The position numbers were made by a program, and so were the translations under genes. 64,000 nucleotides of DNA from Blepharisma stoltei ATCC 30299 (lineage: Eukaryota; Protista; Ciliophora). This document shows positions 42,561 to 48,631 of the stretch, in pieces. The notes beneath the pieces are model-generated. The model was given only the letters and a program-made list of their open reading frames with translations. It searched no databases and had not been told where the DNA came from. Numbering within the stretch: the stretch's first letter is position 1; each line of letters begins with the position of its first letter. The DNA lies in contig CBFDEM010000027.1 of NCBI GenBank assembly GCA_965603825.1, positions 434,001 through 498,000 of the forward strand, read 5' to 3'.

Positions 42561-42571
42561 TATAATTAGCC

Positions 42572-43381
42572 ATGCCTTTAATTCTTCTTTGTGGAATCCC
42601 TCAATCTGGTAAAACACAATTTGCGCTTCAACTTAAACAATTTTTAGAGCAGCAGCAGCAATGGGAAGTAGTTCTTATCAATGAAGAATCTTTATCAATC
42701 AATAAAGCTGAAGCATATTCCTCATCATTTACAGAAAAAAATTTAAGGGCATTGATAAAATCAACTGTTGAGCGAGAGCTTTCACAGTCAAAAGTCGTGA
42801 TTTGTGACTCTCTGAATTACATTAAAGGTTACAGATATGAATTGCATTGCATTGTAAAAACAGTGAAAACTACACATTGCGTGGTCTATTTCGAGATCCC
42901 AGTAGATATCGCTTTACAAAGAAATCAAATTTATCCTCCAGAGTTACTAAGAGATCTAGCTAATAGGATGGAAGTTCCTCAAGAAAAAAATCGATGGGAC
43001 CATCCCTTGATTGTAATCCGTGAAAACCAGGAAATTTCATTTGAAGACATTTTAAACTCTCTTATCACAACAAGACAACTTCCAGATCCAGTTGCAACGA
43101 AAGGACAAAAAATTCAAGTTCCTGATTACGTGTATCAAGTCGATAGAGTCACTCAAAATACCATTGAATTTATCTTAAATGCACAAGAATTATACCCAGA
43201 AGGCTCAGAGGTGCCTATCCCAGACTCAACCCTTCTATACCCTTATTCCCAAAAGCTTACCTCTCTTCAGCTACGTAAAGCTCGAAAGCAGTTTTTACAG
43301 ATGAACAAACACATCCCTACAAATCTTGAAAGCATCCAAGAAGCGTTTCTTGAATATCTTAGAACGTCATTATCATTATAA
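42572..43381 (+). CDS. KTI12: KTI12 (Elongator-associated, PSTK-like P-loop protein)
   Basis: MPLILLCGIPQSGKT, EKNLR, DSLNYIKGYRYELHC, RME.P...NRWD.P. Confidence 0.93.
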   Translation: MPLILLCGIPQSGKTQFALQLKQFLEQQQQWEVVLINEESLSINKAEAYSSSFTEKNLRALIKSTVERELSQSKVVICDSLNYIKGYRYELHCIVKTVKTTHCVVYFEIPVDIALQRNQIYPPELLRDLANRMEVPQEKNRWDHPLIVIRENQEISFEDILNSLITTRQLPDPVATKGQKIQVPDYVYQVDRVTQNTIEFILNAQELYPEGSEVPIPDSTLLYPYSQKLTSLQLRKARKQFLQMNKHIPTNLESIQEAFLEYLRTSLSL

Positions 43382-43398: not shown

Positions 43399-43935
43399 TT
43401 AACTTATTTGACTGATAGCTCCTGCAGAAATAGCTTTGCCAGCTTGTCCGTCAACAAGACTTTCATCATTTCTCCCATATCCAAGATCATCAGGATTTTC
43501 ATGAATTGCAATGATTTTTCCAATAACAGAGAACTTCCCACTCAGTTTTATGTAAGGATCAGAAATTGTGTAGGCTCCTTCACCTTTTTCATCTCCTTTG
43601 ATATTTCCTATGTCTCCTACTTTTCGTTCTGTACTCCAGGGACCACCATGCTTTCTTGCAAATGGGTTAAAAATTTCAGCAGCTTGTCCATCTTTGGTAA
43701 GCTCATGAATTTGGAGACCATGGGATTTATTAGGGTTAAGACCAGTTGCCTTGATTTTGATTTCAGTGTTTAAAGTATAACGAGGCTGAAAGAACTCAGC
43801 TTCTCCAGAAACGAGATTTCCTGATAAACTTGCTTTAGCTTTTACTTCTGTATTGGCTCTTTCATTGGAGGATTTTAAAGTTGAAGAAGTAAACAAGAAA
43901 GTGAAGCCTGCAGCGATTCGAGTTAATACGGCCAT
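43399..43935 (-). CDS. Cu/Zn superoxide dismutase-fold protein lacking several metal ligands
   Basis: GL.PNKSHGLQIHE, FNPFARKHGGP..TERKVGDIGNI, IKLSG..SVIGK...IHENPDDLG, G.AG. Confidence 0.85.
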   Translation of the reverse strand: MAVLTRIAAGFTFLFTSSTLKSSNERANTEVKAKASLSGNLVSGEAEFFQPRYTLNTEIKIKATGLNPNKSHGLQIHELTKDGQAAEIFNPFARKHGGPWSTERKVGDIGNIKGDEKGEGAYTISDPYIKLSGKFSVIGKIIAIHENPDDLGYGRNDESLVDGQAGKAISAGAISQIS

Positions 43936-44000
43936 TTTATTTAATCCACTAATTAAAGCTTTTTCATTTCAAGGTTTACTTAAAATTTATATTGTATTCT

Positions 44001-45200: not shown

Positions 45201-45535
45201 TTATTATTTCACCATGCTTTTAGATTTCCCTAATTTCTTATCTCATTCAATTAAAATAACAGTGGTTTGCGATAATAAAGCTAACTAACAAGCCGATATT
45301 TATGAGAAACTGGTGGTCGCATTTGCTAATTTTAAAAGAGAAAAAATTAAGACCAGCGGATAGATATTTTGATTTTTCTTTAAAATAAGGTAAATATAAC
45401 TGCTTTTTATTCTAATTATATTTTCACCATGATTATTGTTTATCAAAAATGCCGAATTCTGCTTTCAAAGCTTCAGTATAAAAATTTCTGCTTTATGATG
45501 CAAAATTTATAAATTTGATGTATTAATTATCTAAA

Positions 45536-45596
45536 CTTGCTCTATCCTCAGAAGTCACTAAACTTTAAGTAACCCCTTCACATAGATATTGAGAAG
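45536..45596 (-). promoter_or_regulatory. Putative SECIS element in the 3' UTR of the SelW-like gene
   Basis: mRNA 5'-UAUCUAU GUGAA GGGGUUACU UAAAGUUU AGUGACUUC UGAG GAUAGAG-3': UGAA/UGAG non-Watson-Crick core, 9-bp upper helix with three or more G-U pairs, AAA in the apical loop, lower helix UAUC/GAUA. Confidence 0.8.
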
Positions 45597-45857
45597 TTAG
45601 AAATACTTTCTTACTGCCTCTACAATTTCCATAGGTGCGTGTCTTGGGAAAAAGTTTCCTCCTTTTCTGTTGATGACCGTAATTGATTGTCCATTGATGA
45701 TAACGTCCACTTTGAGTTGGGTCATTTCTCCTGGAATGCACTCTATTTGAGAGTCTCGCAGATTTAATTCTTGTATTAAAGCTTGTTTGGTTAAATTGAC
45801 TTTACTCCAGTAGCCTCAAGATCCACAAATCCATACCCGAACCTTTTTACTTTCCAT
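45597..45857 (-). CDS. SelW-like / Rdx-family selenoprotein, 86 aa (codon 14 TGA = Sec)
   Basis: MESKKVRVWICGS[TGA]GYWSKVNLTKQALIQEL...IECIPGEMTQLKVDVIINGQSITVINRKGGNFFPRHAPMEIVEAVRKYF-TAA. CxxU-GY matches the SelW signature, and a SECIS-like hairpin follows immediately downstream. Confidence 0.85.
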
Positions 45858-46039
45858 ATTGTTGGTAGGGTATGATTATAATTAGGGCTTTTAATATGAT
45901 TTGGCGATTCCTATTTAAGGGAAATTATGATTTAAAAATATTGTTAAAATACTTATGCAGAAATCCAGGTCAAGAGTTTTAAATTTATTTAAATTCAAGT
46001 TTATAATAATCTTAATTCATATTTTACGCATAAATCGTA

Positions 46040-47470: not shown

Positions 47471-48631
47471 ATGGTGTCAAAAAGCAGGATAAGCACAACA
47501 AGCTTATATATCTTATCTGCTGTAATAAGATTTGCCCTTCTTATCTACGGGGAATGGCAAGACAGAACGATGGAGCTAAAATACACAGACATAGATTACA
47601 AAGTTTATTCAGATGCAGCAAATTATGTATATGAAGGAAATAGTCCTTATCTGAGACATACATATAGGTATACACCACTTCTCGCCTATATCCTTATTCC
47701 TAATGTACTGGTTCCTTTCTTTGGAAAAATTTTATTTATTGTTGGAGATTTGGTGTCTGGCTGTTTCTTAATAAAACTACTTAAGCTTGAAAACGAAAAC
47801 CCATTATGGAGCGCAACACTTTTGCTTAATCCGATTGCTATTAATGTATCAACGAGAGGCTCATCAGATTCTCTTACAAGTGTTTTATTATTAGGGGCAA
47901 TCTATTTTCTTAAAACAAATAAAATCGAACTGGCAGGAATTCTATACGGTCTTTCAGTTCATCTCAGAATTTATCCGATTATTTACTGTCTAAGTTTTTA
48001 TTTGTGGATTGATAAAGAAAAATCATCGTTTTTCACCTATAAAAGGATAAAATTCACACTCATAAGTGGAGGATTATTTTTAGCACTCATAGCAGTGTTT
48101 TGGAAAATATACGGCTGGGAATTTTTATATGAAACTTATTTATACCATTTCATCAGAAAGGACAACAGGCACAATTTTTCACTGTATTTCTATATGCTTT
48201 ATCTAACTTTTCAATCAGCAGCTAAAGTTCTTGGCCTTCTGGCATTTATTCCACAATGGGGACTTATTGCTTACTTGGGATTCTTTATGACTAAGAAAAA
48301 TTTGTATACAACTCTTATTGCAGAAACCTTTATTTTTGTAATATTCAATAAAGTTTGCACAGCTCAATACTTTCTATGATATATGATCTTGATCCCGCTT
48401 TTGCTTCCAAAATTTAATATTTCATTAAAGAGAATAACAGTTTTGCTTACTTGCTGGGTTGCTTCAGAACTGTTTTGGAATTACTGGTGCTATCGCTTGG
48501 AGTATTTAGGTGAAAACAAGTTTTTAGAAATATGGATAGCGAGCGCACTATTTTTTATGACAAATGCATGGATTCTTCGTGAAATAATAGTTGCATCACC
48601 TGTCATCCCAATCAAGATGCTAGAAGATTAG
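47471..48631 (+). CDS. PIGM: GPI mannosyltransferase I catalytic subunit (PIG-M/Gpi14)
   Basis: KYTDIDY, SPY.RHTYRYTPLLAY, NVSTRGSSD, HL.IYPIIY, RKDNRHNFSLYFY, FNKVCTAQYFL[TGA]Y. Confidence 0.95.

Follow-up and report, generated by a model that had tools for sequence, protein, structure and literature searches.

The single UGA codon of a small SelW-like gene in the ciliate Blepharisma stoltei, a species that otherwise uses UGA for tryptophan, almost certainly encodes selenocysteine (Sec), as had been proposed from the letters of this DNA alone. The assignment is strongly supported by the conservation of the TGA, which extends to a Stentor-like host and to UxxU variants of the motif, by a covarying SECIS hairpin and by the Sec machinery encoded in the genome. 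The gene lies on the minus strand of the window, by which we mean the whole 64,000-nucleotide stretch analyzed, and comprises 86 sense codons, from a start ATG at 45855-45857 up to a stop TAA at 45597-45599. The sequence-only reading had placed its TGA at 45816-45818, and both this position and its assignment to codon 14 were confirmed. Codons 11-16 read C-G-S-TGA-G-Y, with TGG at codons 9 and 17. The main features of the locus are as follows.

45597..45857, minus strand: coding sequence of an 86-residue putative selenoprotein with SelW/Rdx fold (open reading frame, RNA contigs, paralog dN/dS, predicted fold)
45816..45818, minus strand: in-frame TGA, putative selenocysteine codon (TGA in 13 of 13 intact copies)
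45816..45827, minus strand: predicted redox motif of CxxU form, Cys11-Gly-Ser-Sec14, placed where strand 1 ends (sequence, homologs, secondary structure)
45506..45914, minus strand: one colinear, gap-free RNA contig spanning 5' leader, coding sequence and SECIS-containing 3' UTR (strand taken from the gene)

Transcript and public record of the SelW-like gene

The RNA evidence consists of contigs assembled from four runs of one study, which give neither strand, exact ends nor poly(A) site. Within the window these contigs overlie genes and spare the longer intergenic gaps. The SelW-like gene is unspliced, with no gap across either the TGA or the hairpin; because contig 45506-45914 is gap-free, the TGA must be retained in the transcript, which also includes the hairpin. 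This contig extends 91 nt past the stop codon and 41 nt beyond the SECIS core, compared with at most ~40 nt past the stop in the contigs of three neighboring genes and with median 3' UTR lengths of 21-26 nt in heterotrichs (bioRxiv 2022.04.12.488043). The 3' UTR of the SelW-like gene is thus unusually long, and the SECIS belongs to the mature mRNA. Polyadenylation ahead of the hairpin had been named as an observation that would speak against Sec; the contig passes the hairpin, although contigs of this kind do not position the poly(A) site. As a separate observation, in one contig of run X3 the sequence returns from position 45847 to 45604, the junction falling on 7 letters common to both sites; template switching or faulty assembly is the likely cause, with a circular RNA as a conceivable source.

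These data also bear on the idea that a very small intron excises the TGA or that the codon terminates a 13-codon peptide. Introns of 15 nt do occur in the genome, as seen by eye in a SelT-like gene of the Cys form (L005), and the eRF1 of Blepharisma has been reported to keep a weak residual recognition of UGA (bioRxiv 2023.10.09.561518). Against this, the RNA contigs pass codon 14 with neither a gap nor a skip joint, inspection by eye revealed no GT-AG interval of 15-16 nt across the TGA, and purifying selection is evident over codons 15-86 (dN 0.11, dS 0.89 between query and paralog). We consider both forms of this explanation highly improbable.

The gene had been described as absent from the ORF track, but it is not missing from the public records. 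It is recorded there as a tryptophan-containing protein: the protein records of both Blepharisma paralogs read CGSW, which is the misannotation that had been predicted for a translation with UGA as Trp. The flanking genes encode a cation-efflux (CDF) protein and PIG-M, and each contains in-frame TGA, the CDF gene at two sites. Nearby, a KTI12 gene, a paralog of PSTK, occupies window positions 42566-43381 on the plus strand (Pfam E 4e-75), 2.2 kb from the SelW-like gene; its closeness to a selenoprotein gene is probably a coincidence.

The SECIS hairpin and its conservation

Downstream of the stop codon, the expected hairpin, with a GUGAA/UGAG core, a 9-bp helix and an apical AAA about 15 nt past the TAA, was present and proved to covary. 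Its elements are the following.

45541..45586, minus strand: SECIS, compact type I of the GUGA type, with lower helix, core, 9-bp upper helix and AAA loop
45577..45581, minus strand: 5' strand of the SECIS core, GUGAA, located 15 nt downstream of the stop and 234 nt downstream of the UGA
45547..45550, minus strand: 3' strand of the SECIS core, UGAG
45564..45566, minus strand: apical AAA, 11 nt from GUGA

In the upper helix, 45576-45568 pairs with 45559-45551 to give 9 bp; the loop measures 8 nt and the lower helix 5 bp. The arrangement has the eukaryotic SECIS form, that is, RUGA, a spacing of 10-12 nt, AA, an NGAN core and a paired upper helix, and folds with an energy of -17.9 kcal/mol (z -2.45). 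No strong hairpin was found directly after the UGA codon itself. A search with SECIS covariance models had been suggested as a check, and its outcome depended on the model. Two home-built models, both constructed without the query hairpin and without its paralog, placed hairpin 45538-45590 at the top of the 64-kb window, at 26.4 and 27.9 bits (E 0.0007 and 0.002), whereas the Rfam SECIS models gave no match in the region scan, nor did RF00031 in the genome search. A strict SECIS descriptor, partly derived from the query hairpin, has 0.03 matches expected per window. Covariation was pronounced in the upper helix, where all nine pairs showed double changes and none of 500 shuffles reached the score, in an alignment fitted by the model with the query left out, a fit that leans towards structure. 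In a core-anchored alignment, 76 of 81 helix cells pair, as compared to 5.1 of 9 when the arms are swapped between sequences.

We also searched the 41.46-Mb genome assembly (64 contigs) for related genes. A paralog on contig C30 is 86% identical and keeps C-G-S-TGA-G-Y, with dN 0.09 and dS 0.83 between the two copies. The first 60 nt from the stop codon are identical at 57 positions, as opposed to ~50% identity at synonymous sites, and all three 3' UTR changes fall in the upper helix with pairing kept, the outcome being one A-U pair in place of G-C and one C-G pair in place of U-G. A Cu/Zn-SOD gene adjoins both copies (window 43399-43986, minus strand; L018:2319-2873), so that the two stem from one segmental duplication; the 3' flank of this gene is not conserved like the selenoprotein 3' UTR. 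Taken together, the comparison argues that TGA and SECIS are under purifying selection in both paralogs.

A genome-wide search with a SECIS word designed from known examples returned 105 matches. Inspection by eye of the 100 that were listed left four with a convincing helix, which belong to the query, its paralog, the thioredoxin reductase gene and a locus on C35, whose gene had not been among the examples. The C35 SECIS has 9 bp and is found 14 nt downstream of the stop codon of a 243-codon HMG-box protein (L100:1015-1746, minus strand, corresponding to G000:C35 about 719514-720245), and the C-terminal SelW-like domain of this protein contains C-G-S-TGA-G-Y. The fusion could possibly represent a nuclear DNA-binding selenoprotein, loosely comparable to SelH. 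A genome-wide run with the home-built SECIS model scored 150 of 40,129 candidates and missed known hairpins; its three new matches had no selenoprotein upstream.

Outside Blepharisma, profile searches matched metagenomic proteins, most of which end after the motif, in addition to Blepharisma records; no animal SELENOW and no Euplotes SelW1 or SelW2 sequence was returned by the homolog searches. TGA occupies the Sec codon in every intact copy, three from the Blepharisma genome and ten metagenomic, the homologs being mutually related and hence not fully independent events. In all ten metagenomic copies with DNA, a GUGA core follows 13-29 nt past the stop. Seven full-length copies were compared, six of them 40-45% identical to the query. 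The first motif position alternates between Cys and TGA: in L038 (116-379) and L040 (264-527) the motif is UxxU, with two TGA codons and one SECIS each. The decisive case is L046, a locus that carries two tandem gene copies with TGA and SECIS; the RPS20 of its host groups with that of Stentor coeruleus at 90%. Its 15 called genes hold 30 TGG and no TGA, and none ends at TGA; a conserved tryptophan is thus excluded in this host, which shows no sign of using UGA for Trp. Another host, a freshwater metagenome eukaryote of ~27% GC (L045, also L042 and L044), carries the gene with a SECIS and reads UGA as Trp in WD40 repeats, suggesting a second, heterotrich-like lineage with this code. Tandem duplication of the gene is seen in Stentor-like hosts (L043:957-1220 and 1450-1713; L101), and the upstream copy of L101 has a UxxU-like start and appears frameshifted.

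The ortholog comparison, for which U or C rather than Trp had been anticipated, therefore came out as expected: TGA in all intact copies, TGG in none. That codon 14 is an ordinary tryptophan, giving CGSW next to an unrelated or vestigial hairpin, would fit the frequent use of UGA for Trp, which makes up ~36-38% of Trp codons in the long ORFs of the window (50 TGA against 80 TGG) and in a published genome-wide count, as well as the W in the public proteins. Yet the lack of TGG at the site, the alternation of Cys and TGA at the first motif position, the persistence of TGA in a Stentor-like host without UGA=Trp and the compensatory selection on the hairpin all contradict it. The orthologs thus largely refute a plain Trp codon, and we give it a negligible probability. 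A different argument for Sec did not hold. Both ordinary Trp codons of the gene are indeed TGG, as the earlier reading had stressed, but 14 non-seleno redox genes likewise contain 20 TGG and 0 TGA, depriving the observation of diagnostic value.

Decoding of UGA in Blepharisma

The use of UGA for Trp had been read from the flanking CDF and PIG-M genes. The identities of these genes were confirmed by Pfam, and TGA 48377-48379 of PIG-M falls in a motif that we take to contain Trp; the assignment for the genome comes from paralogs, as an MsrA sequence GCY-TGA-G aligns with GCF-TGG-G, and in paralogous Rdx domains TGA falls opposite Trp encoded by TGG. The published genome-wide count for B. stoltei is 44,087 TGA versus 78,535 TGG (bioRxiv 2023.10.09.561518). 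The tRNA-Trp genes examined are multicopy, with a CCA anticodon and the 4-bp anticodon stem also reported for Blepharisma in that study. The sole cognate UGA tRNA found in the genome is tRNA-Sec(UCA), represented by one gene (75.6 bits, 9/4 fold) and already figured for B. stoltei in bioRxiv 2023.10.09.561518. Of the further Sec machinery looked for, SepSecS, eEFSec (E 1.6e-132 against human eEFSec), SBP2 (E 1.2e-20) and a Cys-type selenophosphate synthetase (SelD) are encoded, while PSTK is represented by a candidate below the cut-off (G000:C5:584527-585162, minus strand, 249-codon frame, TIGR03574 E 4.5e-12); the best match of both PSTK models is the KTI12 gene.

Based on the established eukaryotic pathway and the components found, we infer that SBP2, once bound to the SECIS core, enables eEFSec to bring Sec-tRNA(UCA) to codon 14, where it would override the default, near-cognate Trp-tRNA(CCA). 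UGAs on mRNAs without a SECIS would be read by this near-cognate tRNA with its 4-bp anticodon stem. Failure to insert Sec should accordingly yield CxxW protein of full length and not a truncated one, with some termination possible in view of the weak UGA activity reported for eRF1. The proposal that Sec-tRNA competes with Trp-tRNA and not with release factor is thus likely correct in its main part, but the contest may not be exclusive. By analogy to what is thought for SelW, the product would most likely work in the cytosol as a small thiol/selenol oxidoreductase whose partners are proteins.

Sec insertion is inefficient in other systems. Sec might hence be encoded while the near-cognate Trp-tRNA mostly wins, making CxxW the main product and the selenoprotein a minor or selenium-dependent one. 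In favor of such an outcome, the 4-bp-stem tRNA-Trp is multicopy, compared to one tRNA-Sec gene found, and Sec insertion directed by a type I SECIS has been reported to be position-restricted in Euplotes (PMC3737529). However, the Trp reader is no more than near-cognate, and in both paralogs TGA and SECIS alike are under purifying selection, implying that it is the Sec-containing protein that selection maintains. We therefore regard a predominance of Trp as very improbable and Sec as very probably the product under selection at codon 14.

Other genes provide an internal comparison. Among eight GPx loci, one has TGA where most others hold the catalytic Cys, with a matching SECIS in the one checked; thioredoxin reductase ends in G-C-TGA-G-TAG and has a type II SECIS; and a SelM/Sep15-like gene combines TGA with a SECIS-like hairpin. 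In these three loci (L025, L029 and L066, respectively) the GUGA-type SECIS lies 13-27 nt past the stop, and all three would be annotated with Trp at Sec. In contrast, no SECIS-type hairpin follows the MsrA gene, whose TGA stands where Trp is expected. Genome searches for SelO and SelK were blank, the one for SelK lacking a positive control.

The dual use of UGA for Trp and Sec is not new as a concept, having been published by inference, and the SelW-like gene reveals no new principle. UGA serves as Trp, stop and Sec in Condylostoma and Parduczia (Swart et al. 2016, PMC4967479), and as Trp and Sec in Amoebophrya (PMC6394959) and, within one gene, in Blastocrithidia (PMC12153298). With Condylostoma magnum and the other three, Blepharisma would share the Trp default, the assignment of Sec by a SECIS, likewise deduced from sequence, and the location of the SECIS near the stop in short 3' UTRs. 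It differs from Condylostoma and Parduczia, where UGA is also a stop, in that its UGA is described as unambiguous Trp, and the contest should therefore be mainly two-way. In Euplotes crassus, according to PMC3737529 (citing Turanov et al. 2009), UGA specifies Cys and Sec, with Sec insertion demonstrated by 75Se labelling, which bears out the experimental precedent that had been invoked. Both ciliates would have one sense codon for two amino acids, a 3' UTR SECIS that chooses between them and a UGA that is not a stop; the default is Cys in Euplotes, as compared to a putative Trp default via a near-cognate 4-bp-stem tRNA in Blepharisma.

In a literature composed mostly of papers outside subscription, we found no description of Blepharisma selenoproteins except for tRNA-Sec, and none of the SelW-like group to which the query belongs. 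The findings correct a class of annotation, namely selenoproteins silently recorded with Trp in UGA=Trp genomes, and in standard-code relatives recorded as truncated fragments; all metagenomic matches were Trp-read or truncated. The Trp/Sec papers cited here infer the competition between Sec and Trp from sequence alone, and this small, intron-free, single-UGA gene in a culturable ciliate offers a substrate for measuring SECIS-driven Sec-tRNA against Trp-tRNA at a sense codon. More speculatively, selenium shortage might convert every Blepharisma selenoprotein from CxxU to a stable, full-length CxxW form, and the genes might define an undescribed heterotrich Rdx-fold subfamily. We hold this combined proposal to be doubtful. 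If true, it would provide a selenium-regulated amino-acid switch where truncation or decay of the product would otherwise be the outcome, and a subfamily with CxxU, UxxU and HMG-box-fused forms whose compact SECIS is missed by Rfam.

Fold and family of the predicted protein

The full-length scans and the folding used the records P0001/P0002, with W at position 14. The structure model, resting on a two-sequence alignment with W at this position, has a pLDDT of 80 and a pTM of 0.69 and predicts the order strand-helix-strand-strand-strand-helix, with the motif after strand 1. In Foldseek, the top 18 rows were all SelW-family entries including mouse SelW 2NPB (E 1.5e-3 to 1.6e-2, TM ~0.6); the top VIA-align match was a SelW-related protein (Z 7.7, a range termed middling by the tool, 79 aligned, rmsd 3.1), and an Atlas structure matched with TM 0.67. 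Sequence matches in the PDB reflected chance leucine-rich-repeat similarity alone and were discarded.

Profile scores were low, again with W at position 14. For PF10262 the paralog reached 12.2 bits against a cut-off of 22.6 and the query gave no score, and TIGR02174 yielded 12.4 and 15.7 bits against a cut-off of 34.2. The genome searches with these two models did not pick up the query gene, and Pfam returned nothing for a 72-residue piece of it. The G-x-F-E-(I/V) motif of other Rdx domains in the genome is replaced in the SelW-like group by G-E-x-x-x-L-K-V-(D/E)-V. The SelW/Rdx identity put forward earlier is consequently backed by the predicted fold and the CxxU-GY motif but not by the curated profile cut-offs or a GxFEV motif, so that the models place the query as SelW-like rather than as a formal PF10262/SELENOW member.

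In comparison with the SELENOW/Rdx family (SelW, SelT, SelH, SelV, MIEN1/Rdx12), the protein has the same size of ~86 residues and the same strand-CxxU-GY-helix start, with the N-terminal CxxU after the first strand as the family requires, and its predicted thioredoxin-like fold resembles mouse SelW and bacterial SelW-like proteins. UxxU variants are also known for SelW (PMC7539508). It differs in the sub-cut-off HMM scores, the replaced GxFEV, the HMG-box-fused paralog and the confinement of the group to Blepharisma and environmental contigs, at least one of them Stentor-like. The genome also encodes larger Rdx-domain proteins with CxxC/CxxH-type motifs (L001-L004, L006-L010), some with introns of 15-16 nt at the motif.
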